Positions 10,601 through 64,000 of a stretch of DNA of 64,000 nucleotides are shown piece by piece. The position numbers were made by a program, and so were the translations under genes. Under the pieces are notes generated by a model. The model saw only the letters and a list, made by a program, of their open reading frames with translations, was not told where the DNA came from and did no database searches. Every line of letters starts with the position of its first letter. Position 1 is the stretch's first letter. The DNA is from Azolla caroliniana (lineage: Eukaryota; Plantae; Polypodiophyta): assembly GCA_043228905.1 (NCBI GenBank), contig JBHGNT010000002.1, forward strand, positions 8,556,001 to 8,620,000. The letters run 5' to 3'.

Positions 10601-12291
10601 TCGAAATTTAAAAAACCATCGCATAGAAGATTGGGTATTATAGTGTGACATTTAGCATTGTGCTCTAGTCTTGAAACTACATTTATCGTTGCATGTTTGT
10701 TATGATATTTAGCCTCACATTTTTAGTTAAAAAGGGTCTGATTCTTTTTTCTCCCACGAAAACATAAATATGGTCGAGAGACTATAAGTATTGTGTAGAG
10801 TAGAAAAATATATATATTTTAAGAAAACATTGGATGACGTTAGATGATAGAGACCATCGTTCATGTGACCAACAAATAAAATTTTTAAGCTAAAGAACAA
10901 GAGTGAGTCATCATGTGGTGTATTAAAGCCACTTGAGGGATACACATCTATAAGCATATTATGATTCTCGTTATTCTCATATTCATGATCAAACAATATA
11001 ATTTTGTACTATGCTCTGTCTTTGTATTTGTCTTGAATCTCTACATACGAACATTTTGGTTTAATTGGTGTAAAGATATCAATTCGTTTGTTCTAGGAAA
11101 CATTTAGTTGTTCGTTCAAGAAATCTTCCTTTTTACGATCAAGCTACCAAGTTCTTTCCTAGTCTCTTAGACAATATACCTTTCCTAGAGCTTTCGTTAG
11201 CTCCTTACCCAATCCCCCGATAGGTAGGCAATTGCCCCCTCCCCACCCCAATGGTATTCCCTCCCACAATAGCCAATGATAGTCTTGAACCCCATATGAA
11301 TCACCATCATCTCATCCCCAATATCATGATCTAATCTATGAGCAACATTCAATGAATTGAGATAACAACCTCTACCAACACTTGGGGTTTCATCAATGTT
11401 TACGTAGTGATATAAACTAATTAAATAATCATAGGTACACTCATAAATGCCCTATTAGTCAACGTGACCAAGGTTACACCTACACCGCACCATCTCCACT
11501 CATAAATTCCCTATGAGTCAACATGTCCAAGGTTACATCTCTACCACACCATGAGAAAGGAGAGTGAATACACCCAACTCTACACTTAAAAATGTCACTT
11601 GATGTTGAGAATCAAACTCAACTTAACCTAGTGTGGGAACACACCCTGAGAATATGTGAAGTGTGTGAACACACCACCACTATGTAACATAACTAATGTG
11701 TCATAGGAGTTGCATTCTATTGCACATAGTTATTAAGGTAGTTAAGGTTTCCCCCCCTTCCTCGAGAGGGCGTTGTAGTAAGAGAATGTAGAGAGAAGGC
11801 GACTATATAAGCACCTCCCTCTCTCCTTTGTAATTGTGTTGGTTGGCATTCTTGAGAATATACAGTTTTTTGTTTTTTTGTCTATCTTGTGTCTATTCTC
11901 TCTTCTCTCATACAAACACATACATTTCGCATCAAATAATCACAGAACTAATTATTTACATAGTATCAGAGTGAGGTTGGTAGTCTGATCTAGCCCATCC
12001 ACCTGTGTTACATTATACGCCGACGTTCAAGAAGAACTAGCTCATCTGAGAAAGAAGAAGAAGAAAATGAATACTCAAATAGGCAACTCTCCCCCTAGTG
12101 AAAAGTTGGACTGAAACAACTTTGCATCTTGGGAATACAAGATACACCAATACCTTGTCGACCAAGGCTATTGGAGCTATATTGAAGGAACACAAGAAAC
12201 AAAACCCAACCCAACACACGCCAACTACCCAACTGTTGAATACAGGTCTCTAATGGACGTATTCACACTGTCTTCTTTTTTTAGCACACTA

Positions 12292-12570
12292 TGTTGGGAA
12301 CTCGAGGTTCCTTATGTCCGACGCTCGGCCACAACCGAGATTCTTTTCACACACAGAAAAAAAACAGGTAATGAAACGCGACACAAAAGAGGAGAAATGG
12401 TACACAGGAGGTATACGTGGAAAACCCCGAAATAGGGGAAAAACCACGGCAGCCCACAAGCTGCAAACTGTCACTATGCAGAAACATACAACAGTGAGAT
12501 CACAGAGGCAACGACCTCGTGCTCTCAGATCTTCGCCACAGGCGGCGGTTACAACAGAGGCTACGACCTC

Positions 12571-12621
<51 letters not shown>

Positions 12622-13037
12622 GAGTTACGCGCTCTAATTTCTTCTTTCGCCAACAACAACGAATAATCACAAAAAACGACAACAACACACAACTAAAAGT
12701 TTGCCCTAAGTCATATTTATACTAATATGACTTTTCGGCTATTTACAAATGTAGCCTCGATGGGCTCCATCCGGCTCTCCGCAGTCGGGTACTCTTCATC
12801 CGGCTCTCCGCAGTCGGGTACTCCTCATCTGGTTCATACCGGGCCTACACCATCCGACTCTTCGCAGTCAGGTACTCCTCATCCGGTTCATACCGGGCCT
12901 ACACCATCCGACTCTCCGCAGTCGGGTTCTCCCCATCCGGTTCATACCGTTTCGGCCTCGGCCTGTCGGCCTCGGCCGAGTTTGTTCGTCGGCACTGTTC
13001 TTCTCACTTCCCATCCGGAGGGACCTGTCTACCAACA
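12292..13037 (-). mobile_element. Solo LTR (746 bp) inserted in the 5' LTR of copia B
   Basis: TGTTGG...CCAACA ends; TSD CACTA at 12287-12291 and 13038-13042; absent from the 3' LTR of B; the minus strand carries the plant LTR motif CCGTGGTTTTTCCCC..GGGGTTTTCCACG; internal (CT)n and ~60-bp tandem repeats at 12769-12950. Confidence 0.9.
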
Positions 13038-13915
13038 CACTAGACTTAGTCTATTTATGTAAATAGTGAGAAGGGCAGTTGCCCTAAGTTAGTCAGTATA
13101 TAAACTGACTTTGTAACCCAGTTACAGGTAGGTTGCTCATTTTGTAAAAGTTGTAATAAACTTCATTGACATTGTGCCTATCTGTCTCTGACTCTCTCTC
13201 TTATGTACTAGTTGTTTTATTTTCTGTCTTTGTTGCCATCAAAGCTATGATCTTGCATCCATTTACGATCTTATCCTAGAAGAGTTTTGATCTTGTTCCA
13301 CATTAGAAGACGATATTCCCAACATTTGGTATCAGAGCGAAGGTTTGTTTGATTCCACTATCGCCTTCTATCTGGTCTCCATCGACAACTCTCGTTTGTG
13401 TATCTTGAAGATCTTAGCTGATCTCAATAGCTAACCTACAACAAGATTGTTCTTTGCAAAGAGAAACGTGAAAAAGTCAGCACTCCATTGTTCTAGATCA
13501 CTATTGGTTCTGTGATCGTAGCCGCTCGGAGTGAGACTTCTATCTCGACTAGGAAAATTCGTTGCTTTGCTCGACTAGGCGGAATCAAATAGGTCATCTG
13601 TTGCTATTCTCCTAATCGTCGTAGTCACCTGAAGCAAACACGACTCCAAGGGGCAACCCCAATCTGTGTTTCATTCGACTGAATGACATTCGGGAGGACC
13701 AGTCAGATCTGTCCCTCTCATCGTTGCAGTTAACCGAAACAGGATCAGCCTAGAGTATTGCACATAATCCGTGTTGGAAAATCTCGGAAAATTGATATTC
13801 GTAATTGACACGACTTGTGTTCGACTTCGGCTAGAACGACGCCAAGTGAGCCAGGCTACTGCACTCCACCACAATTCATAGCTAACTTCGGACAAAGTCT
13901 ATTATACCAACGAAG

Positions 13916-17681: not shown

Positions 17682-19164
17682 ATCGGACACCAGACTTCAA
17701 CTGTTCGAAACTTTTTATCAATATGTATTATATACTCATTTCGAGTACAGATTTCGAATGTATACGCCCATTACAGGGGAGTGTTGAATATGGGTATCTA
17801 ATGGACGTATTCACACTGTCTTCTTTTTTTAGCACACTAGACTTAGTCTATTTATGTAAATAGTGAGAAGGGTAGTTGCCCTAAGTTAGTCAGTATATAA
17901 ACTGACTTTGTAACCTAGTTATGGGTTGGTTGCTCATTTTGTAAAAGTTGTAATAAACTTCATTGACATTGTGCCTATCTATCTCCGACTCTCTCTCTTA
18001 CATACTAGTTATTTTATTTTCTGTCTTTGCTGCCATCAAAGCTATGATCTTGCATCCATTTATGATCTTATCCTAGAAGAGTGTTGATCTTGTTCCGCAT
18101 TAGAAGACGGTATTCCCAACACCAACATGGGAGCAAGTAGCAAGTTGAGTGTTGTACTGCTTGGCGTCATTTGTTCGTGGCCACATGCTTGGCTACATCC
18201 AAGAAGCCAAGACGCCCAAAGAAGCTTGGCAAAATCTTAAGAAGATTTTCGTGGCCGTCAAGAGTTGAACAATGTCCAACAAAAGGACATGTCGATCACA
18301 AGCTATACCTTGAAGATCAAGGAGCTATGTGATTCACTCGGCTCAATCAATGTGAACGTTGATGATGATAAAATAGTGCAAATATACCTCGGCGGCCTTG
18401 CACCACGATTCGGCACCATGCAAACTGTAGTCCTAGCAAGGGAGAATCCTCCTTTCTTCTTTGACCTTCAATCAATGTTGTTGGTCGAAGAAAACCACAT
18501 CCAAACAAGAAGCACCACCTCGGAAGGACACATGCTCTATTCGCACTTAGATGGTGGTACGATTGCTCAAGAAGAGGTCGATTCGGTCAAGGGCGTAGTG
18601 GACGAGGTCTATCCCATGAAAGTAACTCCCACTTTCGCAAGACAGTGGAAACCCCCAAGGAACTTTCAGAAGAAGGGAGAGCTTCTATGCTGAACCGAGC
18701 TGACAAAACAACCCCATCGAATGCTGATATTGTGGCAAAATTGGCCACCATGGGCAGGAGTGCTGAAAGAAGAAAAGTGAGTCAGCTTCCACAAGCTGGA
18801 AACTTACCAACTATGCCACCAACTTTGACTATGACGACTATGGTGGAATGTTCGTGATGAGAATAGAGAAAATTCTATGTCGGCCTCCAGTTCGACCAAC
18901 ACTTCCAATACAAAAGATGTATGGTGCTTCGATTCTGGTGCCTCAAACCACATGACATCTCATCAAGAATGGTTTCGAGACATGCAAACGTCAAATTGAC
19001 CCGATTATGTGGAGATTGGGGACACCACTACTCGTCTGATATGGCATGTCGACAATGTCCCATTCGGGAAAGAAGGTAATCAGACATATATAAAAAATGT
19101 CTTACATGTTCCAACCATAACAAAGAATTTGGTCTTAGTTGGTCAAATCATGGAGGAAGACAAG

Positions 19165-30160: not shown

Positions 30161-32729
30161 ATGGCACAATGTCAAGCGGAAGGGAGAAAACATCCCAGTG
30201 CCATGGATATGTATGTAGGTATTTTTCACAGTAAGCTTCAAAGCGCTACAGTAGAAGTAGATAAATGCCAACAATGGTCTAGATATGGCTATGGAGATCA
30301 ATCTGGCGTCCATCCATCGCTAGAAAAGGTAAGAAGTAAGATTTCGTTGCAACCCAAGGAAGATGAATCCACCTTCTATTATCCTCAGAACAACATAAAT
30401 AGGCACCGCAAGTCATTGTCGCCATCATCATCATCATCATCGTCATCATCATCATCATCATCATCATCATCACTGTCATCATCAAATAGGAATCTTGATT
30501 CGAACTATCCTACCAAGAACAGATTTGCAGATCAGGAACCTAAAGTCACATTGCAAGCCCTAAATTCACATCCGAATGGTCATCAATCCACAAGAACCCA
30601 GAAATCTAGTGAGGAAACCGTTGGTGCAACAAATAGTTGTAAGAACCTTAAAGATGATGATGAAGAAAAAGCCACCATAGATGATTATAGTTATCCTAGG
30701 ATATACAAATCAAGTGAACAAACCACACCAAAGTGTAAGACTAATGTGATAAGCAATAAAGAGAGACCGAAATGTAGCGCTAAAGAAGGAAGAAGATGGT
30801 CGTCTATGGGTAGTGTTGATTCTCCCTTTTATGTTGGAGGGAGCCCTACTGCAAACGACAACAGTAGTAGGAGGTCATCATTCTCTAATGGTGGAAGCTC
30901 CGATGGAGGTAGCCCCATCACTAAAGATAATGAAAGTTGGAAAAGACCTTCTTCTTCTTCTTCTTCTTCTTCTTCTTCTTCAGGGGGATATGGTTTGGTT
31001 GATTCCTTGTGCCCGGGCGGAACTAGCCCTAACAGTAAAGGAACCACCCAGATTTCCTCAATCACAAAAAGTAGCACCACTTGTAAAGAACCATGCTCAA
31101 ACATGAGTATCAAAGGCATGGGCAATATCCTCGGTAATGGTTCAAATTCTGTGAAATCAAAAGGTCCGATAAATAAGGCCGGACTCCAGGACAAGGTAGT
31201 TGATTGTGTCTCTAAAAGATTGGATGATGTGACACATCCTGCAAACTCCAATCCAGTTGTGATCAATAGCAACTTGGGTAATATATGCATTGGAAATATA
31301 CTCAACCATGGATCTGTTGTAAGATTGAGTAGCAAACTTGTTGAGGAATCTAGAAATGGATTTCAATCAGATAATCCTGAGGAGATTAAAAACGCTGGTA
31401 ATGAGATGTACAAGAAGGGAAATTTCTCTGAGGCTGTAGCATTATATGAGAAATCAATCACAATATGTCCGAATCATGCTCCCTACAGAAGTAATAGGGC
31501 TGCAGCTCTTATAGGATTGGGTAGATTAGGAGAAGCTGTGCAAGAGTGTGAAGAGGCAATTCGATTGGATCCTCAGTACTCGCGAGCTCACCAGAGAGCT
31601 TCTCATCTCTATGTCAGGTGTGACATTTTATTGATTATTTTTCATATTATAACATGTATCGTCCTCTTATTGCATCTCCATTGTGCCGTAACAAGCATAT
31701 TATTAGTTTGATACTTTTTGTACTGATTTCGAAACTGTTGCTATAAAAGTGTGTTTCATTACATCTTTTCTAATAGATAATCTCAAATGATGACCAAACA
31801 CACATTTTGAGATTCTTCTTACCAAGGCCAATACATTGATATATAGCATGATAAGTAAACCATTCATTTGGCCTTTGTAAGTAGCTGTAATAAAGTAAAA
31901 ATTTAGGTAGCTTCAAAGAGGCTACTTTTCATCTTTATTTCTGATTCATTATTTTTTTGTTGATAATATTGTATGCTATTTCATTAAGATAACCAATATC
32001 CCCAACATCAGGAATATCGTCAATATCACCAATTCCAGGAAATTTTGATATTTCTGGAATTATTTGAATTCGATCAATTCCATCAAAAGGATCGATTTCA
32101 TTAATTTCATCATATCCAGGAATTGCCTATTATTCATGCTTTGATCCCATGTCATTTCCAGCACTAAAAGAAGAAATTCATAGGACCTTTGGTTTGGAAT
32201 GGTGATGATGAATATTACTTCATTGTTGAGACATGCCTTTTTTCTGGTTTTACAGACTGGGTCTGGTCGAGAGTGCCAAGAGACACTTGGCAGATTCACG
32301 AAAAGCTGATGCCAAAGATATGCAAAGCCTTGAGATGGTGGAAAAACACATCTCAAGGTGCATTGAGGCGAGAAAAGCGGGCAACTGGAGAAACTGTTTG
32401 TTTGAAAGCAATGCAGCTATCACTGCTGGTGCAGACTCTGCACCACAGGTATTGTTTATACCCTACCTACTTATGTTATGTGGATTTTGTTTGGGCTGAA
32501 ACCTAAGATTAATATAATGATTGGAGTGAATCATGGTTAAATAATATCTGTTTCGGGTGGGAAGTAGCTCATTTCAATAATAGTGAAAACAACTCAATCT
32601 AAGTATACATTGTTTGAAAATTGCAAGTCTTCAAGTAAAAACAGAAGGAGAAATTCTGTACTAAACCACAGGGTGATTCCATCAAATTCTGTAATAAAAG
32701 AAGTATATATATGTATGTATATACATTCA

Positions 32730-41975: not shown

Positions 41976-42761
41976 ATAGTTACCTCTTCCAAGCTACTAA
42001 TCATCCTAATATTCTTTCGCACGGGATGTCAATGGTCGATTAGGTATGTTTTGATCATAACTTAAGGGTGGTCAGGAAGATTAGGTTCTTCTATCCAATC
42101 TATTCACCTTTCTTTTACTTTAATTTGGTCTATTGATTAATAAGACATTCTTAAGATGTAGATGTATTGATAGATATACCAACCAAGGGTGTGTTTGAGC
42201 TTTTGATCTAGGGGTGACTTGTCTTCCTCATCCTTTTTTGAATCCACATATAGTTGTGTTCCAAAGTTGGTGTATGTCTCATCCAAGGTGCCAAGAAGTG
42301 TTTGAATTTTGGTGAAAACCATCAATGACAAATCATGGTGTCATAGCCAAAGATTGAATCCTACATCTGCATGTATTACATTGGCTAATTATTCTTGTGT
42401 ATTCTAGAAAACATGTACTTGGATGATGTGCCAGGTTGAGATTAGATGAAATCTATAGAGAGTAGAAGGTAATGGTAACCACTATGTTGGATGTTAGCTA
42501 CAGTTGCATCAACAGGGTTTGAGACAACATCATGCATCAATAGGTATGATGACGATTGCAATGATGGTGGATACGGCAACATGTGAACAATTAGTAGTGG
42601 TGACGACATATGGCAATGAGAGGACATGCAACAACCTGGAATCAAAAGCAACCTTTGATCGAAAGCTAGAGTCCAAGCTAGCCTTTGACTCGAAGGTAGT
42701 ATTCGATCGAAGGCTAGAGTTAAAGGTTGGCTTTGATTAATAAATTTATAACAATAGAAAA

Positions 42762-42834
42762 TGGAGAAGCGGGGTATTGATCCCCATACCCCTCACATGC
42801 TAAGCGAGGGCTCTACCATTTGAGCAACATCCCC
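42762..42834 (-). tRNA. tRNA-Ala(AGC), probably a pseudogene
   Basis: 73 nt GGGGATGTTGCTCAAATGGTAGAGCCCTCGCTTAGCATGTGAGGGGTATGGGGATCAATACCCCGCTTCTCCA followed by TTTT; about 7 differences from the recalled plant consensus, affecting the A box, B box and stems. Confidence 0.85.
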
Positions 42835-42884
42835 ACCAATATTAATAATCAAAACTTGATTTTGCTCAATGTTGGTATACCGTT

Positions 42885-45288
42885 CAAGAAAAGGAATTAT
42901 TTGTAGTTATACATGCGCTCAAAACATGGCGCCATTATCTTTGTGGAAATTGTTTTGTGGTAACTACGGACCACGAGTCCTTGAAATATTTTTGTGACCA
43001 ACAAGACCTAAAAGGTTGTCAGGCACGATGGGCTGATCTCATCCAGGACTTTGATTTTTCCATACGATATCGTAAAGGTTCCATGAACACTGTCGCTGAT
43101 GCACTAAGTCGCATCCATGAAGTTAACATGCTTAGCTTCATTGAAAGTATCCTGATGACAGTTATTTTGTGAAATAATGGGCAAGAGTTGAGTCTGGATA
43201 GACACCACCACATCCTCAAAGGAATCCTTCCACATTGCTAACAGTCTCCTCTACCGTAATGGGAAGGTTTGTGTTCCAGATTTGCCTGAGGTAAAAAAGA
43301 GAATTCTTTTTGAATGCCATGATGCACCCTGGAATACATCGTACACTCGTTCTCATCTTCACTCAATTCTATTGGCCTAAGATGCGTCTTGACATACATA
43401 GCTATGTGACTAAATGTCACCAATGTCAGATTAACAAAGCCGAGCGATTTAAAGCCACAGGACTTTTACATCCCTTGGACATTCCCAATAATAAGTGGGA
43501 AAGTATATCCATGGATTTTATTGTTAGCCTTCCTCGCACCCAAAAAGGCCATGATGCCATCTGGGTTGTGGTTGATAGAATAACTAAAATGGTCAAATTT
43601 ATTGCTACTAAAACCACAGTAACAACTCCTGAATTGGCTTACCAATTCGTTGATGAGTTATTTTGTTTTTATGGGTTACTGATGGATATCGTGAGTGATC
43701 GAGATCCAAAGTTTACTAGTGACTTCTGGACGCAAGTCTTTAAGAAGTTAGAAACTACGTTGAGCATGAGCTCCATGGATCATCCTCAATCTGATGGACA
43801 AATAGAACGAGTAAATCAAATTATTGAGGACATGCTTCGAGCATACGTTGGTGCAAAACCAACAAAATGGGAACGTTATCTCCCAATTTTGGAGTTTGCT
43901 TATAACAGCTCCAAGCATACGTCGTCAGGATATAGTCCTTTTATGTTGATGTATGGTTTTCAGCCACGACCCCCGATTGGTGTTAATATACATCATGATG
44001 AGTTGCGAAGTATGCAAAACTTTCTTCGGGATATGCAAGATATGTTGCATATTGCACGAGATAATATAGAAAAAGCTCAAGATAGAGCGCGTTTTTACGC
44101 CGATCATAATAGGCAACCTCATGTATTCAACCCTGGACAGAAGGTATTTTTACATGTACCTCACAATTCTAAGACATTGTCTACGGGTAAGTGCGCTAAG
44201 TTAGCCCCACGGTTTTGTGGACCTTTTCAAGTCCTCAAACGCATTGGTTCATAAGTCTATCGTCTCACTCTTCCCAATGGCGTTGAAATTCATCCAGTTT
44301 TTCATGTAAGTCGTCTAAAAGAACTTCTAGGTTCTGGCAACAATACAATTACAACTAAAACTCTAGTTACTTCTAAAGAATTATCTTCTAAACCACATGT
44401 ACCAAAAAGAATTCTCGATGTTAAAATCTGCGTACAAAAATAATCTGAGAATTTAAAATTAAATGGATGGATAAATCTATCAAAGATGCCACATGGGAAC
44501 GCGAAAATACTCTTAGAACTAACTTCCCTAACTTTCCATTGAAAGAGTGCAATGTTTTAAAGAGGGGGAGTATGTTACGAGCATGACCATATAATATCCT
44601 GTGGTGAGAATTTACCGTAGTATTCTATACACGTGGATAAGTGTGAGGGTTAAACGAGAGTGTAAAGAAGGGGAGGATTACTTTTAATCCTCAGGATTGA
44701 GACAACCCATTAGGTCAAGTGTGAACTTGACTGGGGGCATTGGGTCTTGCTATAAATATGAGGCCTAGCTACCCTCATTTCATCATCCCTTGACTTCGTC
44801 GAGACTCTGTTTCGTAGTGGGTCAACTCTTGTAGTGAGCGCGCCAGCCCTAGGTATGACTCGACTCCACAACGGTGATATGGGACGCCGATCAAGGCTCG
44901 AGTCCGTCTCAATCCCTTCGCTTGGGGGTGGTGGGGTGGATCGACACCCTTCTTTCTCTGTCTCCTTTCTTATTTCATTTATATTATATGCTTATCATAT
45001 GCTTACATTAGACCATCGTTCTAACAATAACTAAGAGTGTGTGCGTTGTAACTTAGCCGCCATTTGTTAGACGAAGACGAGCTCGAGGTTGGTGCCTGCG
45101 AGTCCCATTGTATTCCTCTCTCTACTTAGTGATTCTGTTTTTGGGGTTTATGGACCCCCGTGGTTTTTCCCAGCTCGGGTTTCCACGTTAAATATCTGTG
45201 TCTCTGTTTGTGTATCCATTTCGCTTGTTTCTTTGCACCTGCATACGAACGAGAAACCGGTTGTGGCCGGTCAATTCTCAACACAACA
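42885..45288 (+). mobile_element. 3' half of a Ty3/gypsy chromovirus: RNase H, integrase, chromodomain, PPT and 3' LTR (from 44573)
   Basis: TDHESLKY and VADALSR; HPG..CHQCQ, SMDFI, VSDRD and PQSDGQ; GPF motif; chromodomain KWMDKSIKDATWE near 44460; PPT AAGAGGGGGAG then TGTTAC. The LTR right end is approximate. Confidence 0.9.
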
Positions 45289-46919: not shown

Positions 46920-51320
<4,401 letters not shown>

Positions 51321-53963: not shown

Positions 53964-56222
53964 TGTTGAGAATCAAGCTCAACTTGGTCTAGTGTGTGAA
54001 CTCACCTTGAGAGTGAAGAGACACTCCAACGGTCAAGAGTCACCATTATGTCACCACTTTGTATTCTAGCATTTAGTATGAGTCATAGAATCATATTCTA
54101 TGACACATAACTTATGAGCTTTCACATTCCCCATGGTCCATGAGGCTTGTAGTTAATGAAGAAAGAGGGTGACTACATAAAGCACCCTACTCCCACCTTG
54201 TATAATGTTGAGTATTTCTCCTTTGTTAATATACTTTTACCTTGCGTATTCCTTGTCTCTCTCACTCACTCTCTCTCTCTCTCTCATACACACACATAAC
54301 TCATATGTCTTCCGCTTCATGAGAATCCATCTCTTAATTCTTTACATGGTATCAGAGCGATTTGGTAGCTCGATCTAGCCCATTCGCCTCATCGTGATCA
54401 TGTGTTGTGCTCCACGCCGACGACCAAGAATCGGCTCATCGCTATCGTAGCTTCGCTACATAGCTCGCATTCAAAGAGAGAAGAAGAAGAAGAAGAAGAA
54501 TCAACATAATGAATACTCAAATGGGGAGCGCTCTCCCTACCGAGAAGTTGGATCAAAACAACTTCGCATCTTGGGAGTACAAGATGCACCAATACCTTGT
54601 CGGACAAGGCTATTGGAGCTACATCAAAGGAGCGCATGAAGACCGACCCGCCGAAGCGGCTCTCGGATACGCAACATGGGAGCAAGCTGCAAGCCACGTG
54701 ATGTATTGTTTGGCGACATGTGTTCACGACCACATGCTCGATTACATTCGAGAAGCCAAAACGCCGGAGGAAGCGTGGGAAAACCTATGAAAGATTTTCG
54801 CCACCAACACGACTGCGAGGAAGCTTCAACTCCGCCAAGAGTTGAACAACATTCAACAAAGGGATATGTCCATCACGACATACACCTTGAAGATCAAGGA
54901 GCTTTGCGACTCGCTCGGCTCAATAAGCGTAAGTATAGATGATGATGAGATGGTGCAAATATGCCTCGGCGGCCTCGCACCACGGTTCGGCGCGATGTGA
55001 ACCGTCATTCTAGCACGGGAAAAATCTCCCTCCTTCTTCGAGCTCCAATCAATGCTATTGGTTGAAGAAAACCACGTGCGTACAAGGAACAATGAGTCGG
55101 AAGGCCACATGCTTTACACGCACTCTAATGGAGGAAGAGGACGCGGACGAGCAAGAGGCCGATTTGGCCAAGGACAAGGCGGACGAGGTCCAACCTACGA
55201 CAACAACTCCTAATTTCGGCCACAAAACGGAGGCCAACAAGGAACCTTCGCAAGAAGGGGGAACTTCCACTCCGGCCCGAGCCGTCAAAACGCAACCGAA
55301 TGCGGATATTGCGGAAAGCTCGGCCACCACGAAGAAGAGTGCCGAAAGAAGATGCGTGAATCGGCTTCCACAAGCCGACAACTCGCGAATTACGCGCACA
55401 ATTCCGAATACGAAGAGTATAGCAGAATGTACGGTCACAACTCCGACTACGAGGATCGTGGCAGAATGTACGCATACAACTCCGACCGTGGCGGAATGTT
55501 CATGATGAAACATAGAGCAAAGTCTATGTCGGCCTCTACCTCAACTAGTGCCCTCAATCCGGAGGACGTATGGTTTGTTGACTCTGGAGCCTCAAACCAT
55601 ATGACATCCCACAAAGAATGGTTTCTCGAACTTCGAGAGCCGGAGCGACCCGGTTATGTCGAAACCGGAGATGACACTACGCACCCGATTCGGCACACAT
55701 CGGCAATGTTCCGTTCGGCGAAAGAGGTAAGCAAACATACATTAAAAATGTCTTGCATGTACCCACCATCACAAAGAATTTGGTCTCGGTCAGTCAAATG
55801 GTTGAGCAAGGGATGCAAGTACGATTCGACCAAGAAGGATGCTTCATCGAAAAAGAAGGCTGAATCATCGCACGCGGAGAAGAGAGGGCCGGATGTTCAT
55901 TCTCGATTCGCACGAGATGAAATCCGCCATGTTCGCGAAAAGCACGAAAGCCGACTCCGACATAGAGCTATGGCATAAGTGAATCGGCCACATCAATCTC
56001 AACAAACTCAAAGCAATGAAATCGAAAGGAGTCGTCATTGGACTCCCAACATTCAAAAAGGAGATTGAAGGTGTATGCGAAGCGTGCCAATTCGGCAAGC
56101 AACACCGACGCCCATTTCCGAAGGAGCGGAATGTGAGCAAAGGCGTACTCGACGTAATTCATTCCGATGTATGGGGTCCGGCTCAAACGGCGACATTCCG
56201 CGGATGCCGATATTACGTTCTC
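53964..56222 (+). mobile_element. Ty1/copia element E (same family as A): 5' LTR 53964-54346, PBS 54347-54358, gag-PR-INT start, interrupted by the gypsy element
   Basis: TGTTGAGAATC...TTTACA, then TGGTATCAGAGC; MNTQMGSALPTEKLDQNNFASW, WFVDSGASNHM, CEACQFGKQHR and VIHSDVWGP. Confidence 0.93.
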
Positions 56223-56641
56223 TGTTGTTCTCTGACCGGACAAGGCCTAACACAAGGTGTCACGGAGACACTTCACCAAAGGGTGATTACGGCATAGGAT
56301 TATGACTCAACGATTACACTGACTTAAGTAGGTTACACGATTAGAGCGCTTTTGTTAATTACACGCGTAAGATATAACAGTAATTACAGAACGGAAATCA
56401 ACACAGAAGTATAAACACCATACGCTCTATTAATTATCTGCTGCGATTACAATGGGGTCCGGGCCTTTAAATAGGTTTCCGGCCCGTAGTACAAAACGGT
56501 GCCTATCGCACCTATTCGGGACCCGTCCGGATCTGGAACGGCATACCGTTTCCAGTCCGTCCGTCCACACTATGCTTATTTACAACCATACTTAATTAAT
56601 TCCTTCACTCCGTATTTTGGACTCCTTGCCGGCCGGTAACA
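56223..56641 (-). mobile_element. 3' LTR (419 bp) of the gypsy element
   Basis: Minus strand reads TGTTACC...GAACAACA, with TATA box CCTATTTAAAGG (56475-56464) followed by TGTAA, AATTAATA and a T-rich stretch; co-oriented with gag-pol. Confidence 0.85.
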
Positions 56642-56643
56642 CA

Positions 56644-56660
56644 TGGCACGCCCGTGGGAC
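56644..56660 (+). promoter_or_regulatory. tRNA-Arg-type primer-binding site, antisense to the element, at the position expected for the PPT
   Basis: TGGCACGCCCGTGGGAC lies 2 nt inside the LTR and matches the recalled Tat/Ogre-type PBS TGGCACGCCC(A/G)GTGGGAC with a 1-nt gap. Confidence 0.75.
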
Positions 56661-56693
56661 AATACCTTGTACGTCGAACCCTTCTCGGCCCCT

Positions 56694-58295
56694 TCATTGT
56701 TCACCCAAATTGTCCAAAATACTTTGTTCCAGAGTTTCCAATTGTTCTTCCGGTTGTGGTTGTTGTGGCTGTGCTTGCTGCTGCTGCTGTGGTTGCGGTT
56801 GGGACTGAGACTGCTCCGGCTTCTCTATAGGCGGCTGCTCCGTTTGTTTCTCTGACTCCGGCATCTCCGTCTGACTGTTTCCAGTCCGGTCTCCTTCCAG
56901 TAACGGTTCTTCATCACTGAGGTTGACCGTAACCGGTTCTCGTGCTTTCTCTTCCCGGATCCGGGACCTCTCGTAGCTTTCAAACTGGATCTGCGCCTCC
57001 AGCCTGTCGTCGTCCAGCTGAGCTACAAGTTGCCGGACTTGCCCTAGTTGGTCCTCTGCCAAGGCTTGAAAGTCTTCGGCCAGCTCATCTCTTATGCCGG
57101 TGAAGTCTTCGGAAGTCAGCATATAGCAATCATCCCCCTCCTTCCGCTGGTTCTCTACGTCGGCCCGGAGCAATTGGAGTTCCGCCGCGTTCGGGGCCCA
57201 CTTGGTCCACCATTTGACGGAACCGTTGTCAATCAAGCTCTTGGTCTGGTTCAACCAGGCCCGCATGATATCCTGGATGCGACTTGCTCCCATTTGCGCT
57301 CTACTTTCCACAACTTGTCGTTCCTCCTTCAACTGCTTGATGAGATTAGCCATATCCTCCGCCTGCTCTTTGTAGTGCGTCAGCTGCCCTTGATATGTTG
57401 TTTGCAGCTTTTGCAGTACCGCCGCCGCTCTTTCTCTTTCCGCCTGCTGTTGCCTGAGGAGCTCTGTCCGAACCTTCTCTGCCTCTTCCAACCGTCTTCT
57501 GGTTTCCGCTTGTTCATTAGCGTATGCCGTTGCGGTCCGATCAACTGCTTGCCGGAGCTCATCCGTCCGTTCCTTGTGCTCCGTTTGCATCCGTTTATAC
57601 TCCCGGTGCAAGTGCTCAAATTCCTCCGTTTTTTGTTTGAGCTTGCCGTTGATCTGGCGATGGTTCTGGTCCTCCCGGTCCTTTAGCTGCCGGAGTTCCT
57701 CTTTCAGGCGCTCTACTTCTGTTTCGGCGTTCCTCCGGAGCCTGTCCTTCTCTTGCAGCATTTTCTCCTTTTCCTCCTTGAGCCGGTCGTACGCTTGGTG
57801 GCCTTTTCGTAAGCTCTCCTCGGCCCGGCGTAGATTCTCAGCAGTCTTTTTGAGTTCTGCCTCCGCTGCCGTCTTCAACTCTCTTTCGCGGCTCCTCAGC
57901 GCTTCTTGGGCAGCTAGCTCATCCTTTAAATCCGCAAGCTCTTGGGCTTGTGCCGCATTTCTCTCCGGAACGGTTTCCGTTGCCGGGGTCTGATTGCTAT
58001 GTACAGGTTGATCTGACGCTTTATTCTGTACATTGCTCGGAGTCATCGGTACTTGGTCTTGTGTTTTCAAAGCCAATTGAGCCATTTCCCTTGTGACCCT
58101 GTCCAAGTCTTGTTCAAGGCTCCGGATTCTGGACCGGGCCGTCTCTAGATCTACGGTTGTGACGAGCAACCGTTCGTGGTGCGCTCTCTCCTCCGCCTCT
58201 ATGTACTCGACCGCTCCGGCAATCTGCTCGCCTACCCACCGTAGCCACATGCTACTGGTGCCTTGCTGCTGTGCTGGTCGGGTCGGCTCGTTCAC
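56694..58295 (-). CDS. Gypsy accessory ORF B: long coiled-coil protein with a Q/E-rich tail
   Basis: Uninterrupted 533 codons, E/R/Q/K heptad-like composition, no obvious transmembrane segment; the GTG start is uncertain. Confidence 0.75.
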   Translation of the reverse strand: MNEPTRPAQQQGTSSMWLRWVGEQIAGAVEYIEAEERAHHERLLVTTVDLETARSRIRSLEQDLDRVTREMAQLALKTQDQVPMTPSNVQNKASDQPVHSNQTPATETVPERNAAQAQELADLKDELAAQEALRSRERELKTAAEAELKKTAENLRRAEESLRKGHQAYDRLKEEKEKMLQEKDRLRRNAETEVERLKEELRQLKDREDQNHRQINGKLKQKTEEFEHLHREYKRMQTEHKERTDELRQAVDRTATAYANEQAETRRRLEEAEKVRTELLRQQQAERERAAAVLQKLQTTYQGQLTHYKEQAEDMANLIKQLKEERQVVESRAQMGASRIQDIMRAWLNQTKSLIDNGSVKWWTKWAPNAAELQLLRADVENQRKEGDDCYMLTSEDFTGIRDELAEDFQALAEDQLGQVRQLVAQLDDDRLEAQIQFESYERSRIREEKAREPVTVNLSDEEPLLEGDRTGNSQTEMPESEKQTEQPPIEKPEQSQSQPQPQQQQQAQPQQPQPEEQLETLEQSILDNLGEQ

Positions 58296-59662
58296 TGTGG
58301 ATTGTCTGGCCTGAGTGCCTGTATCTGCCGTTCTGGTTCTACTCCTTGGCCGCTGTGTGTGCTGTCTGGGCTCGCTGGCTGTTGAGTTCCGGTTCTCGCC
58401 GTCTCCGGAGCCGTTGGAATGACTTCTTGTATAGAAGCCGACAAGGCCGGTTCTATACGGACCGGTTCCGGTTCCTCCCTTGTGGTTTGCTCAGGTTGAG
58501 TTGGGGGCGTTTCTTCCTTTTGCGGGTCCGAACGCTCCCCCGCTGTCCCGGCGGTCCTACTTCTTGACCGTCGTTGGAGGTGCTCTACTGGCTTCTCCGT
58601 TTCCTCTTCTTGGGTAACGGCATGTATCTGTGCCGTCAAGGGTTCCGGTTCCTTCTGTCCCGGTCGCCGTATGGTTATCTTAACGGGTCGGACCGGTGAC
58701 ACCTCCTCCGGTTCTGGGAGCCGTTTCTTCCCTTTCGTCGCCTTTGACGCCAGCAGCTGCTGTCGTTTGGACGCGGGCTTCGAGGTGCTTCCTTCTGATA
58801 ATCTTGGCCGCTTCTTTGGCTGAACGGTCTCGACCGGCGGCGCGAGCAATGTTATCCACTGAGCTACGGCATGCCACAGCTTTCGGCCCTCCTTGCCGTC
58901 CTTTCCTCGTACCGTGTCGATTGCCGCGCACAAACCGTCTGCAATCAACACCGGCCAATCCACCTTGATCCCTTCATAGGTGGCTATGATCATCCCTGCC
59001 CGATTTTTTGGCATGACAGGGGGTCGGGGGTACACGTGGCCGTACTCATGGAGCACTCGAGCTATCTCCCTGAATAGCGGATCTTCGCCGCCCTGCGTTC
59101 GATAGCCTTTGCCGGCTAGAGAGTACTCACCGAAATATCGGATGAGTTGCTCCGAGGTTGGGTTATCGATCTGAAAAATACCTCCCTCCGAAAGGCCTGT
59201 TAGCGCACGGATCGCTTCCTCGGTGATGACTTCTGTGTCGAGCTCCTTGATGACCCGGTCGGCTTCTTTGTGCGGTGGTGCCTCCATGATGGTCAAGAAC
59301 CCATCCAGTCCGTGTTGCCTGAGCCATTTCCTGGCCGCTTCTGACAGCGTTTGTGGGTCCATGTCTGCTTCGAGGTCGAGGAAAGATGGCGAGGTAGAGT
59401 GGTGATGAGAGTGAGAGCGAGCGAGAGAGAGTTCCGAACGTGGGGGTTCTCTGAGTGCAGGTTCGCGTCTGATAAGCTTCAACCGCCTTGGTGCTTCTGT
59501 GCTTCTTGGCTCGCGAATTGAAAAGGTCTCCATGCGTTCTGCTTTTTCTCTGTGCGTCTTGGCGCCTTTTTCGAGCATGCGCAGGTCGTGTACCAATTTA
59601 GTATTAAGTAATGTGGCGGCTCTTAAATGCCCACTACGTACCTTTTCGCTCCTTGCTTTCAT
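58292..59662 (-). CDS. Gypsy accessory ORF A: putative globular domain, NLS-like motifs and a P/E-rich linker
   Basis: Uninterrupted 456 codons; ITEEAIRALTGL and EGIKVDWPVLIADGL segments resemble plant retrotransposon accessory domains; PKKRPR and KGKKR motifs. Confidence 0.75.
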   Translation of the reverse strand: MKARSEKVRSGHLRAATLLNTKLVHDLRMLEKGAKTHREKAERMETFSIREPRSTEAPRRLKLIRREPALREPPRSELSLARSHSHHHSTSPSFLDLEADMDPQTLSEAARKWLRQHGLDGFLTIMEAPPHKEADRVIKELDTEVITEEAIRALTGLSEGGIFQIDNPTSEQLIRYFGEYSLAGKGYRTQGGEDPLFREIARVLHEYGHVYPRPPVMPKNRAGMIIATYEGIKVDWPVLIADGLCAAIDTVRGKDGKEGRKLWHAVAQWITLLAPPVETVQPKKRPRLSEGSTSKPASKRQQLLASKATKGKKRLPEPEEVSPVRPVKITIRRPGQKEPEPLTAQIHAVTQEEETEKPVEHLQRRSRSRTAGTAGERSDPQKEETPPTQPEQTTREEPEPVRIEPALSASIQEVIPTAPETARTGTQQPASPDSTHSGQGVEPERQIQALRPDNPQ

Positions 59663-59735: not shown

Positions 59736-62700
59736 TTACACATCCGTAGGTCCCTTCGGACCCTTACCGTTTTCCTTACGGGTTGCCGTGTCTTCCTTCG
59801 CCTCTGCTACGGGTTCCCCGTCGTCTTTTTCTTCCATCCGTACCGTTCCCGGACAGGTTCCCGGTATAGTGCCGGTGGGCTGTATGAACGGGTTACTTGG
59901 CATCGGTCCTTTATAGGGCTTTAGTCTAAATCTGTTGACCCACTTGCCTAGCACTTCACCGGCAAGTGTCCCTAACTGATAGGACCCGTTGTATTCCCGT
60001 GTCAGCCAATACGGGCCTGCCCATCTAAACCGGAGTTTACCCGGCATCTTGCCCATCCTCGTTTGGAATACTAGCACCGGCTTTCCGATTTCGAACATCT
60101 TTTCATTACCTTTCCGGTGACGGTCAACGAACGCTTTCCGTTGTCGTTGCTCCAATTCCATGTGTAGGATGCTGGCCAGCCGTTGCTCCTCCAGTTCGCA
60201 TAGTGCTGCTAGCCGCATTTCCTCCGACTCCTTTTCATTCAGCCGTTCCCGTAGTTGGATCCGTAAGCTTGGGACCTGAAATTGCACCGGCATGACCGCC
60301 TCTAAGCCGAACGCTAACCGGAACGGCGTTGTCCGGATACTTGTTTTGTATGCCGTTCGGTACGCCCATAGCGCGCTATGGAGCTTTGTATCCCAGTCCG
60401 TCCGGTTTTCATTGATGATTTTGCGGAGAATGTTCTGGAGCGTTTTGTTGGTTGACTCTGCTAACCCGTTTGCTTGTGGGTAGTACGGTGTGCTCCGTTT
60501 ATGGACCACGGCATAGAACGTTGTTAAGCTTTCAACTACCTAGCCGAGGAAGTGCCCTCCTTGGTCGCTGATTAATTCAATCGGAAATCCATATCGGCAC
60601 CAAATGTTCTCGTACAGGAATTTTGCTGTGGATGACGCGGTGTTGTCTCTCAAGGCCTTAGCCTCCACCCATTTAGTGCAATAATCTGTTGCCACGATGA
60701 CATAACGATTACCCGTTCTCATTGCCGGTGGCTTGAACGGTCCGACAAAATCCAACCCCCACTTCTGGAATGGCTCTAGTGGAAGTACCGGTTGGTGTGG
60801 CATCCGTGCTTGCTCCGTAGGCTGGCCCATTCGTTGTCATAGGTCACATTCCTTAGCATACTTGACGGCGTCTTTTAACGTCGTGGGCCACCATAAGCCG
60901 CTCTGCCATACTTTCCTTGCCGTCGCTTCCCCGGCATAGTGTCCTCCGGCAACCCCACAGTGTGCTTCCCGTAAGATTACTTGTTTCTCGTCACTACGGA
61001 CTGCCCGTCTCCATATTCCATCTGCTCCCTTGTGGTAGAGAGTGTCCCGTAACAGACAGAAATTGCGGCTCTGCACCGCCAGTCGTTTCCTCTCGTCCCA
61101 GTTCATTTCCTCCGGTGGCAGGCCCGTGCTTAGGAACTGGTGTATGTTTGTCAGCCACCTATCTTCTGATGCCACCGTGTCGTCCGCTGCCGTTTCCGGG
61201 GTGATACGGAATAACTCTGCGTCCGGGAATTCATCCGATACTCCGTCGCCTGATTCTCCGGACTCTAACCGGCTCAGGTAGTCTGCTACGGCATGCTGGA
61301 TACCGGGCCGGTGGAAGATCTCGAATTCGAACTCCTGCAACAGCAAGGTCCAACGGGCCAACTTACCGGTCAGGGACGCCTTGGACACTAAGTACAGGAG
61401 CGCCGAGTGATCCACATGAAAGGAGAACTTCCTTCCCAATAGGTAATGACGAAACTTTGTGACACTGTAGATCATGCCCAGGGCCTCCCGTTCCGTAGTC
61501 GAATAGTTCTTCTCCGCTTGGGACAGCTTCCGGCTGGCGTAATATACCGGCCGGTACCATTTGGGCTCCGTAAGTTGCATTAAGGCGCTGCCGATAGCGA
61601 TGTCGGAAGCGTCAACGAACACATGAAATTCCTTGCTCCAATCCAGAGGCTGCACGACGGGTGCTTGCGACAAAAGTACCTTCAGGGCATTGTATGCCTT
61701 ATCCTCCGTATCCGTCCATTGGAACGGTGTCCGATGTACCGCGGTGTGTAATGGTGTAGCCAAGTCAGCCAAGTGACGGAGCATCCGGTTGTGCCACCGG
61801 ATCTGTCCTAAGAATCGGCTTAGTGCTTTGGCCGTTTTCGGCGCCGGTGCCCTTAGTATCACGTTTACTTTGTCCGGTTCGACCGCAATGCCCTCCTTAC
61901 TTACAATGTGTCCCAGTAAGATTCCACTTGACACCCCAAAGATGCATTTCGCTGGGTTTAAGCTTAGCCGGTATAACCTACACTTTTCAAGGCATAACCG
62001 TAGGTGCTGCAAATGGTCTTTTTCCCGGCTATAGACTGCAAAGTCATCCAGGAAAACCTGCATGAAGGCTGGAATGTATTCGCCGAAGATCTCCATGATG
62101 ATTCGCTGGAAAGTTGCTGGTGCCGTTTTTAGTCCGAACATCATTACTACGGCAACAAACACCCCCCATTCGGTGACGAACGCTGTCTTTTCCTGGTCGT
62201 CAGGGTGCATCCGGATTTGATTGTATCCGCTGAACCCGTCTAAAAAGCTATAAACTTCATGGCCGGCGACGGCATCCAGTACTCCATCCGTGAACGGAAG
62301 AGGGAATGCATCCGTAATTGTGGCTGCATTTAGTTTCCTGTAATCTACACATACGCGGATTTTACCGTTCTTCTTTGGGACGACGACGATGGGGCTCAGC
62401 CACGTCGCTTTCTTTACCGGCCGGATGAAGCCCACTCTTAGGAGTTTGTCGATTTCCTCCTTCACTTTGGCGGCGTAGTTGGGGTTCATTCGGTAACGTC
62501 TTTGCGCCACTGGTTTCGCGTCCTTGCCTAAGTGGATCTGATGCTGATATAATTGAGGGTCCAGCCCTCGCATGTCTTCGTATGACCAGGCGAATACGTC
62601 GCGAAACTCCGTGAGAAGTTTGATCATCGTTGCTTTATCTTCCGGCTTCATCTCTTTGGCGATGTGTACCGGCTTTGATTCGTCCTTGCTTCCTAGGTTC

Positions 62701-64000
62701 ACTTCGTCGAGCTGGGATGTTTTTACCCGTTGGGAAACGGCCATTTCCCGTTCCAACGCTTCCTGTGCTTGCCGTAATTCCCGAATCGAATCTTTGTCTG
62801 GTTCGGCTTCGGTGTCGTCCCGCTGCGGCAAGTATGGTGCTACGGCTTCAGCCACGTCAATCTCGAAGAGTGGTACGATCTTCGGGTGTTCCTCCAAGTA
62901 CTGGGCTTCTTCGTCGTCTGCTAACCCTTCAAGCATGTTCACGCATTCCGCATACAGCGGTGTGCATTCCTTACCGTTGCTAGTCCGTGGTTGTGTCGGT
63001 ACCCGGACCTTGGCTTTTCCGCGCCGGAAGGTAATCATATTTTTACGCCAATTTTGCTTGATGTGTGCTGTTTTCAACCATGGTCTGCCCAACAACAGTG
63101 GGTACGTGCCTTGCGCCTGTAGCTGCAGCACGACAGCTGAGATGTGAAATGTGTGACCTCCTATGGTGACTTCCAATTTCCGTATTAAGCCCGTCGGCCG
63201 TACAGAGCTCGTATCCGCCATCCGTAGCCAGAACGGACATGGCTCCCATTCATGTATACCCAAGGCATCACACGTGCGGAGGCTTATTACGTTCACCCCG
63301 GAACCTCCATCGATTACTGTGTCGGGAAGTTCGTGCCCTTTGACAATAGCTGTAATCACCGGACTACTAGTGTCCACCACCGTCGGTCCCTCCTCCGGAT
63401 TCGAGAAGAGGACTGGTGCCGGTGGGGCTACACCGTCTGTCATGACCGTTTTTAGTCCTTCCGTAAATCGCGGCATGAGTTGCAAGAGTCTTCCTAATGG
63501 CAACGTGATCTGACATTCTTGCAGTGCTTGCCATGTCTCGTTTTCTGCGTGGCTACCGCCGGCACTCCCTATGGTATTCGTCTTTTGCCGTTCCGCGTCC
63601 GCGACGTTCCTTTCATTGGCTTCCTTCACCCATTCCGTCGCCTGTTTTCGTATGGCCTCTTGTGTTTCCCACTCTTTGGCCATGCCTTTCGACCGTGTGG
63701 TTACTTGCTGTACATCCGCCACTTCCGGAACCACCATATTAACTGCTGGTCGTTTATCGTAGCTCTTTGCCGGGCACTGGTTACTGTAGTGGCCTTCCTG
63801 CCTGCAGTAGTAGCAGTACTCTTTACGGGTATTGTTGGATTCAGCATTGCTGGTAGCCGGAGTCGGTCCCGTAGTGAGTGGTGCGTTCTGTGCCGGTTGG
63901 CTCCTTGGGGTTCCATGTTCCGGGTCCCTAGGGTGACCACCTTTCTTGAAATTACGTTTCTTATTATTCTTATTTTTATTTCGGTAGTCCTGTCGTGGTG
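59736..64000 (-). pseudogene. Gypsy gag-pol in a single frame, with two premature stops in the integrase
   Basis: CYYCRQEGHYSNQC knuckle (~63775-63815) is in frame with pol; PR VIDGGSGVN; RT LDGFSGYNQI and FLDDF; RH VDASD; INT HCGVAGGH, LDFVGP, SDQG and NGLAES; stops at 60837-60839 and 60540-60542. Confidence 0.93.

Follow-up and report, generated by a model that had tools for sequence, protein, structure and literature searches.

How can a retrotransposon start the second strand of its DNA when the site that should hold the plus-strand primer is occupied by what looks like the end of a tRNA? The question is raised by a Ty3/gypsy element in a 64,000-nt stretch of the Azolla caroliniana genome (GenBank assembly GCA_043228905.1, contig JBHGNT010000002.1, positions 8,556,001 to 8,620,000 of the forward strand; hereafter the window), whose internal region ends, just before the 3' long terminal repeat (LTR), in a copy of a tRNA 3' end rather than in a polypurine tract (PPT). 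To our knowledge, LTR retrotransposons and retroviruses are all assumed to prime plus-strand synthesis from a PPT, and the PPT is scored as a hallmark by annotation tools. As described below, the tRNA-end copy and the segments adjoining it (hereafter the block) are a strictly conserved family trait and not an accident of the window locus, and the presence of such a copy at the PPT site points to a way of starting the plus strand that appears to be undescribed.

The element is read from the minus strand of the window. Its 3' LTR (419 bp, TGTT...AACA) occupies 56223-56641 (-), and the internal reading frame nearest to it, an accessory open reading frame (ORF) of 533 aa without a Pfam family, occupies 56694-58295 (-), with its stop codon at 56694-56696. 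Between the two, the coding strand reads stop-AGGGGCCGAGAAGGGTTCGACGTACAAGGTATT-GTCCCACGGGCGTGCCA-TG-|TGTTACC, the bar marking the start of the LTR. Upstream of this bar lie a 2-nt spacer (56642-56643, -; TG on the coding strand, CA on the plus strand), which is invariant in all relatives, the 17-nt tRNA 3'-end copy itself (56644-56660, -; GTCCCACGGGCGTGCCA on the coding strand), a small hairpin (56661-56673, -; GTAC-AAG-GTA(C/T) on the coding strand), which one relative, contig L138, rebuilds from other bases, and GGGTTCGA (56674-56681, -), which corresponds to the T stem and the 5' half of the T loop of a tRNA and reads TCGAACCC in antisense. The preliminary description of this locus had reported a tRNA 3' end, CCA included, in place of the purine tract, and had remarked that the opposite strand reads as a junction of LTR, CA and primer-binding site (PBS); both observations hold, the copy lying 2 nt from the LTR and the PBS-like TGGCACGCCCGTGGGAC following CA on the plus strand. 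TGGCACGCCCGTGGGAC occurs once in the window (the chance expectation is 0.06 for up to three mismatches), and no second copy of the block was found there with nhmmer and a 48-column profile. In the window element and in five relatives, the final 19 nt before the LTR are a tRNA-end copy of 47% purine, and the abutting PPT expected of a Ty3/gypsy element is absent. The sole purine-rich run near the junction, GAAGGGGCCGAGAAGGG (56695 to 56679, -), directly follows the stop codon, sits 37-53 nt upstream of the LTR and overlaps GGGTTCGA by 3 nt. Right after the stop codon of the 533-aa ORF, AAGGG(N)CC (window 56682-56693, coding strand AAGGGGCCGAGA) is conserved in 5/5 lineages, and this post-stop purine-rich segment may be a vestigial PPT or a part of the module.

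The limits of the LTR place the block outside it. In contig L076, unrelated AT-rich DNA stands before the LTR start TGTTACCGGCCGG (TGTTACCGG; TGTTACC), which fixes TGTT as the first bases of the LTR and leaves the block in the internal region. The outer boundary is fixed by the junction with a copia-type integrase ORF (55352-56222, +), which served as the insertion target and abuts the outer LTR edge, and by a loose end at 56223 in one public run, which carries the reverse complement of the PBS seen in L001, L002 and L140. In these three contigs, CAGTTT(T) and TGGCGACCACGATTCC stand between the LTR end ...AACA and gag, and the family thus has a normal sense PBS, TGGCGACCACGA, for a tRNA-Arg-like primer; a 5' PBS just inside the LTR is seen in L138, L141, L142 and L143 as well. 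The assignment of 56223-56641 as the 3' LTR is borne out, given that coding lies entirely on the minus strand and that a conserved TATA box (CCTATTTAAAGGCC, ~190 nt from the LTR start) is found on the coding strand (-). It had also been reasoned at the outset that a sense PBS at the other LTR, which lies beyond the window, would speak for the priming of both strands by tRNAs; its presence in the relatives (TGGCGACCACGA) favors that reading.

Homologues of the 533-aa ORF and of gag gave access to relatives in contigs that had been assembled independently from JGI and ENA samples. The window, L001, L002/L140, L107 and L138 share the junction CGTGCCA-TG-TGTT without variation, as part of the common sequence GTCCCA(C/T)G(G/A)(G/A)CGTGCCA-TG-TGTT, and an upstream TTCGAC is also kept in all of them. 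The ORF is 82% identical to that of the window in L001 and 60% identical in L002 and L140, L107 is a 3' LTR copy sitting inside another gypsy element, and L138 has a gag that is 52% identical and an LTR that is otherwise unalignable. In a MAFFT alignment spanning -300 to +450 around the LTR start, the bin from -20 to 0 has the highest mean pairwise identity of 38 bins (0.95), the TATA bin forms the second peak (0.81), and most bins of the LTR and of the ORF end lie between 0.3 and 0.7. Likewise, contigs from four public runs with three organism labels, when placed along 55900-57400, gave the top summed word depth at bin 56614-56664 in each run. A scan of metagenomes with an LTR-start pattern of 16 specified bases returned mostly chance bacterial matches, the relevant ones being L076, L083 (the same contig as L002) and L107; L135-L137 and L003 carry homologues of the 533-aa ORF but end or break off before the 3' junction, and no copy of the block was found in viral contigs. 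Across the family, both the motif and its 2-nt spacing, whose conservation the preliminary description had proposed as a check, are kept, and a normal PPT stands beside the LTR in no block-bearing family copy.

The tRNA that the block resembles was identified by means of a comparator, a tRNA-Arg(TCT) in the viral contig L144, which was found by a degenerate pattern and whose 3' end is GTGGGTTCGAGTCCCACAGGGCGTGCCA. The block equals positions 49-76 of this tRNA (28 nt, including CCA) with three differences: position 66 is missing, a hairpin of 12-14 nt stands directly after A58, and some copies have an extra A in the T stem. The ordinary 5' PBS of sister families uses the same tRNA end (TGGCACGCCCGG in L141, TGGCACGCCTGGGG in L138). 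By this comparison, the block appears to copy the 3' end of a UCU-type tRNA-Arg, and a host tRNA-Arg(UCU) is the putative match, as judged indirectly from the L144 comparator and from the PBSs of L141 and L138. Eukaryotic tRNA genes lack the terminal CCA, and the block must therefore have come from a mature tRNA or from a PBS. The initial attribution of the motif to tRNA-Arg, which a motif without any tRNA counterpart would have contradicted, therefore stands: the motif equals the tRNA-Arg(TCT) 3' end minus one base and recurs in the sister-family PBSs. The Tat/Ogre lineage, to whose PBS the motif had been likened, has an extra archaeal-type RNase H (aRH) domain, and the Ogre PBS is that of tRNA-Arg (PMC6317226). 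Neither a match to the aRH, RVT_3 or RNase_H families in any window ORF (E<=0.01) nor a chromodomain in the window element was detected, and for this reason the element is not placed in Tat/Ogre, its tRNA-Arg-type PBS notwithstanding.

Side-by-side comparison of both inner LTR flanks reveals a mirror layout. In the sense direction, the 5' module comprises a PBS of 12-14 nt, a hairpin of 4-5 bp (CTGC/GCAG, CTGTG/CACAG or CTGCA/TGCAG) and then CGAAC, which is complementary to the T loop; read in antisense, the 3' block comprises TGGCACGCCCGTGGGAC, a 4-bp hairpin (GTAC/GTAC in the window family, GGGC/GCCC in L138) and then TCGAA(C/T)CC. The tRNA-matching segments of the block are fixed, and the sequence of the hairpin varies. 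As for the sense RNA, no consensus fold was supported in RNAalifold (covariation term +1.2, with a single compensatory pair), single-sequence folds of the block were not better than those of shuffles (z -0.13 to -1.8), ARAGORN called no tRNA at the block, and Rfam returned no tRNA match there even at E<=10; a tRNA gene or tRNA-like structure was rejected on these grounds. The combination of fixed tRNA segments, a variable hairpin and the lack of a sense fold fits pairing with a fixed partner in trans better than it fits a structured tRNA mimic. An Rfam match to transfer-messenger RNA (tmRNA) at window 56500-56692 (-; 6.8 bits, E 1.1) was set aside as chance, GGGGCCGAGAAGGGUUCGACG resembling the tmRNA 5' end. 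On the 5' side, the segments downstream of the PBS (L001:2321-2360, L002:3862-3900, L138:1551-1590 and L141:55-100) share a hairpin whose fourth pair covaries (CTGC/GCAG versus CTGTG/CACAG) and, behind it, a conserved CAGCGAAC(G/A)AC that complements the T loop of the tRNA; PBS, hairpin and this motif look like an extended 5' tRNA-binding module.

More distant relatives indicate what the block may have replaced. The nearest named relatives of the pol protein (<=49% identity) come from the liverworts Riccia and Marchantia, the fern Adiantum, Pinus taeda and Selaginella, and those of liverwort, fern and conifer are proteins without PF13456. A full relative from Riccia sorocarpa (L143; pol 38% identical) has a canonical PPT, GAAAAGGGGGAAA|TGTACACGG, together with a PBS, TGGCGACCATG, three bases after the LTR and a target-site duplication (TSD), CTGTC. 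L142, with a pol about 50% identical and different accessory ORFs, has the PBS TGGCGACTCCGC at a 2-nt spacing, and its 3' junction shows neither the tRNA-end block nor a clear PPT. Homologues of the 533-aa ORF are confined to elements with the block. Because L143 has a PPT at this site and L142 is without the block, the block marks a subclade that also has the 533-aa ORF, and it does so at the very site of a distant relative's PPT; the best explanation appears to be a derived state that replaced the PPT in one clade of plant (bryophyte- or fern-type) Ty3/gypsy elements. L142 itself begins with the 3' end of a preceding element joined via a shared LTR, a tandem arrangement (L142:1-1566 and 11781-13257), and carries arrays of ~109-nt tandem repeats downstream of its 3' LTR (L142:13199-15986).

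How, then, might the plus strand begin? It is the 3' end of the plus-strand primer that fixes the left terminus of an LTR, and integrase usually trims 2 nt. Given the LTR terminus plus 2 nt, the CCA end of the block falls where the 3' end of that primer must be. We infer, with a probability of roughly 55%, that plus-strand DNA starts from a CCA-3'OH, supplied either by a host tRNA on the cDNA or by the genome's own tRNA-end copy. A narrower and more tentative proposal, which could readily prove wrong, is that the clade primes both strands with host tRNAs: the minus strand would start from a tRNA-Arg on the genomic RNA, and the plus strand from a second one, of the UCU type, at an inward-facing PBS, in which case neither a PPT nor an RNase H-resistant primer would be needed. 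On the main reading, the block would constitute an inward-facing second tRNA-binding site, the mirror of the 5' PBS module, with its CCA-3'OH exactly 2 nt before U3. Minus-strand synthesis would begin as usual, from a tRNA-Arg at the sense 5' PBS; the minus strand, once extended past U3 and the block, would carry 5'-..AACA-CA-TGGCACGCCCGTGGGAC-hairpin-TCGAACCC; and a UCU-type host tRNA-Arg would anneal to this strand by its 3' end, along with its T-loop region, and be extended into U3. Priming in trans would require a host tRNA with the 3' end ..GGGCGTGCCA or ..CCCACnGGGCGTG. In a less favored version of the last step, RNase H would spare the genome's own identical RNA segment and cut after CCA. 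With either primer, the plus strand would begin TG-TGTT..., and the removal of the two extra nucleotides by integrase would yield the observed LTR terminus.

A host tRNA on minus-strand DNA is favored because the PBS layout is mirrored, because the sequence is fixed and because both substitutions seen in the 11-nt core, coding-strand G-to-A changes in L001 and L138, preserve on the cDNA strand a G-T wobble with the tRNA. Several points nonetheless weigh against the proposal that the block supplies the primer. Three variants are too few to carry the wobble argument, and transitions are the commonest changes anyway. The missing position 66 limits contiguous pairing with the tRNA to ~11 nt (7-8 nt plus wobble in L001/L138), and pairing with the TCGAACCC part would be impeded by T-loop modifications such as 1-methyladenosine at position 58 (m1A58). 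The hairpin covariation comes from two lineages with pairing registers one column apart, L076 is the single example recovered of the 5' boundary, the tRNA-Arg(TCT) comparator comes from a viral contig and not from the host tRNA set, and the use of the block as a primer is deduced from sequence comparison. Dual tRNA priming, the central suggestion of the preliminary description, is favored by the sense 5' PBS of the relatives, whereas the priming itself is deduced, and a primer cut from the genome's own tRNA-end copy would fit the sequences equally well.

Other roles for the block must be weighed against its supply of the primer. It might act on the sense RNA, as a 3' partner in an initiation complex in the style of Ty3 and Gypsy or as a tRNA mimic, with the plus strand starting from an unrecognized non-purine primer, a reading that we consider unlikely but worth keeping in view. 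The block might pair with the freed 5' acceptor and T-stem strands of the unwound primer tRNA, or with the PBS, and so bridge the genome ends, or it might recruit reverse transcriptase (RT), Gag or host tRNA enzymes. Such 3' PBS segments bridging genome ends are known in Ty3 (PMC5371799) and Drosophila Gypsy (PMC1635307), in L138, 8 nt of the 3' block are complementary to the element's own 5' PBS (TGGCACGC..), and L002 can form an outer stem GTGGGA/TCCCAC with weak pseudo-acceptor pairing. A bridge does not generalize, however, because the 5' PBS of the window family (TGGCGACCACGA) is that of another tRNA-Arg and forms only ~5 bp with the block; genome cyclization by pairing of PBS and block, which holds in L138 only, was thus rejected. 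A mimic, in turn, is opposed by the lack of an Rfam tRNA-like or ARAGORN match, of an acceptor 5' strand and of a significant fold, and any role on the sense RNA leaves the plus-strand origin, the exact 2-nt spacing and the CCA end unexplained. Alternatively, the block might be a passive fossil, a reverse-transcribed tRNA stretch or an inverted LTR-PBS junction that recombination captured once, with the upstream GAAGGG(G) as the real PPT. The block does resemble an insertion between the AAGGG run and the LTR, AAGGG after the stop codon is conserved in five lineages, and the PPT of the Riccia relative is GAAAAGGGGGAAA. Yet priming from GAAGGG, which was rejected, would lengthen the LTR by ~45 nt, in conflict with the LTR start at TGTT in L076, the block is more conserved than the coding sequence and the TATA box across a divergence that erased LTR similarity, and the family is very abundant in the runs of several organisms, all of which makes a fossil improbable.

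Two further readings would do away with the puzzle by reassigning the junction. The preliminary description had offered an alternative in which reverse transcription acts on an RNA antisense to the mRNA; 56223-56660 would then be the true 5' LTR and PBS of a plus-strand template. In its favor, the plus-strand junction LTR-CA-TGG.. has the textbook 2-nt PBS spacing, while the sense PBS is spaced by 4-6 nt. The relatives, however, show an ordinary sense PBS and then gag after the LTR, the conserved TATA box lies on the coding strand, gag-pol has the same sense, and under this arrangement a tRNA-end copy would once more stand before the other LTR, such that no PPT is restored and nothing is gained; the alternative is unnecessary and highly improbable. 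The chance that the junction is a chimera of two elements or a misassembly peculiar to the window locus, which had been named as a way in which the initial observation might fail, is negligible: nothing speaks for it beyond the odd look of the junction, and it is ruled out by the identical junction in five independent JGI/ENA assemblies and in run contigs of three organism labels.

Departures from the canonical primer have precedents among reverse-transcribing elements, including the self-priming of Tf1, the half-tRNA primers of copia and Ty5 and the translocation of a capped RNA primer in hepadnaviruses (PMC5371799 and PMC6317226 for part of these). The likeness to the block is that the canonical primer is replaced by another RNA 3' end, but the Tf1 and copia/Ty5 primers serve the minus strand, with the hepadnaviral case as an exception, and we know of none among these that primes the plus strand with a tRNA or a tRNA-end copy. 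In the Mauriceville retroplasmid, and in the 'genomic tag' idea, a tRNA-like CCA end is the start point of reverse transcriptase; there the template RNA physically ends in the CCA at its 3' side, within a full tRNA-like fold, whereas the CCA of the block is internal, without an acceptor 5' strand and without a significant fold. A 5' PBS with extended tRNA contacts, such as the bipartite PBS of Ty1, is also comparable, as the block in antisense likewise has a TGG start, a 2-nt spacing from the LTR CA, complementarity to a tRNA 3' end and another segment that complements the T loop, in the layout of the clade's own 5' module; it is nevertheless on the wrong strand and at the wrong end for a 5' PBS and would act on minus-strand DNA, for the second strand. 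With the canonical PPT of Ty3/gypsy elements and retroviruses (PMC5371799), the block would share its place as the last internal nucleotides before U3 and a 3' end that defines the left LTR terminus, but it is not a purine tract but a tRNA 3'-end copy ending in CCA, and where the PPT primer is an RNase H-resistant piece of the genome, its primer may be a host tRNA in trans. The bipartite 5'-3' PBS of Ty3 and the 3' PBS of Drosophila Gypsy (PMC5371799; PMC1635307) are likewise tRNA-related and near the PPT and U3 of a gypsy-type genome. Those segments are complements, in the sense RNA, of other arms of the primer tRNA and coexist with a PPT (PMC5371799; PMC1635307), whereas the block has the same sense as a tRNA 3' end, belongs to another tRNA than the window-family 5' PBS and has no abutting PPT; it was not classed with the bipartite PBSs on account of its sense and of the different tRNA.

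The survey by Neumann et al. of 13,863 plant elements names tRNAs, half-tRNAs and self-priming as ways to start the minus strand and regards the PPT as a general feature; PBS sequences are not given in the supplements of Neumann et al. (2019). In the literature consulted, whose coverage is incomplete and whose silence is absence of evidence only, no tRNA-end copy, no inverted or antisense PBS in place of a PPT and no tRNA-primed plus strand was found, and the work on the 3' PBS of Ty3 and Drosophila Gypsy was all that it offered on second or inverted PBSs or on PPT-less elements. Among string matches to the motif or to candidate tRNA 3' ends none was relevant, one of them being an unrelated mulberry microRNA precursor.

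The remainder of the element is in keeping with a Ty3/gypsy identity. The pol region (59736-63737, -; protease, RT, RNase H and integrase, or PR-RT-RH-INT, by Pfam matches) consists of two ORFs with a break in the integrase region. The ORF running from 63737 to 60837 holds PR (residues 129-219), RT (453-611), RNase H (674-803) and the integrase zinc domain (915-965), and a fragment of the integrase core follows downstream (60509 to 59736, -). The domain order PR-RT-RNase H-INT is that by which Ty3/gypsy elements (Metaviridae) are recognized, and the window pol is 52% identical to that of L142 across 1304 aa. A second accessory ORF of 456 aa (58292-59662, -), also without a Pfam family, is 64% identical to its counterpart in L002. 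The C-terminal part of gag lies at 63228-63908 (-), the rest of gag, the PBS and the 5' LTR being beyond 64000. In the window, the LTR ends are seen in the 3' LTR (TGTT..AACA) and one flanking 5-mer, TTCTC (56218-56222), a putative TSD whose partner also lies beyond 64000; both LTRs with the TSD are present in L143. The early account of gag-pol, two accessory ORFs and the promoter on the minus strand therefore stands with regard to strand and TATA box, with the qualification that the window holds the C-terminal tail of gag alone and that the pol frame is broken in the integrase.

The window also holds other features. A long interspersed nuclear element (LINE)-type element at 3273-8942 (+) has a zinc-knuckle ORF, endonuclease/exonuclease/phosphatase and RT domains in several broken ORFs, and zf-RVT. 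Two direct repeats of 289 nt (13036-13324 and 17833-18121), 95% identical and 4797 nt apart, flank a copia-type Pol_BBD ORF and are probably the LTR pair of a copia element. A tRNA-Ala(AGC) gene (42761-42835, -) adjoins an unrelated second gypsy integrase fragment (43310-44254, +; Integrase_H2C2, rve, SH3_Tf2-1). An ORF at 46920-47561 (+), in which an ATP-synthase alpha/beta N-terminal beta-barrel domain was recognized (E 3e-20), may represent a gene fragment or inserted organellar DNA, and an ORF of 516 aa with C-terminal tetratricopeptide (TPR) repeats (30161-31711, +) is the sole clearly non-transposon coding candidate seen.

For the annotation of such elements, the consequence is a practical one: LTR finders that require a PPT will mis-score or mis-orient block-bearing elements, because their 3' junction reads as a perfect LTR-PBS on the wrong strand. 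If the proposed start of the plus strand is correct, a successful, high-copy clade would have swapped the PPT for a tRNA-end module, and the plus-strand primer would prove to be replaceable. The clade would then have a second dependency on host tRNAs and, with it, offer a second target for host control by 3' tRNA-derived fragments (3'-tRF) or other tRNA-based means, and these elements would provide a natural system for learning how reverse transcriptases select and remove their primers.

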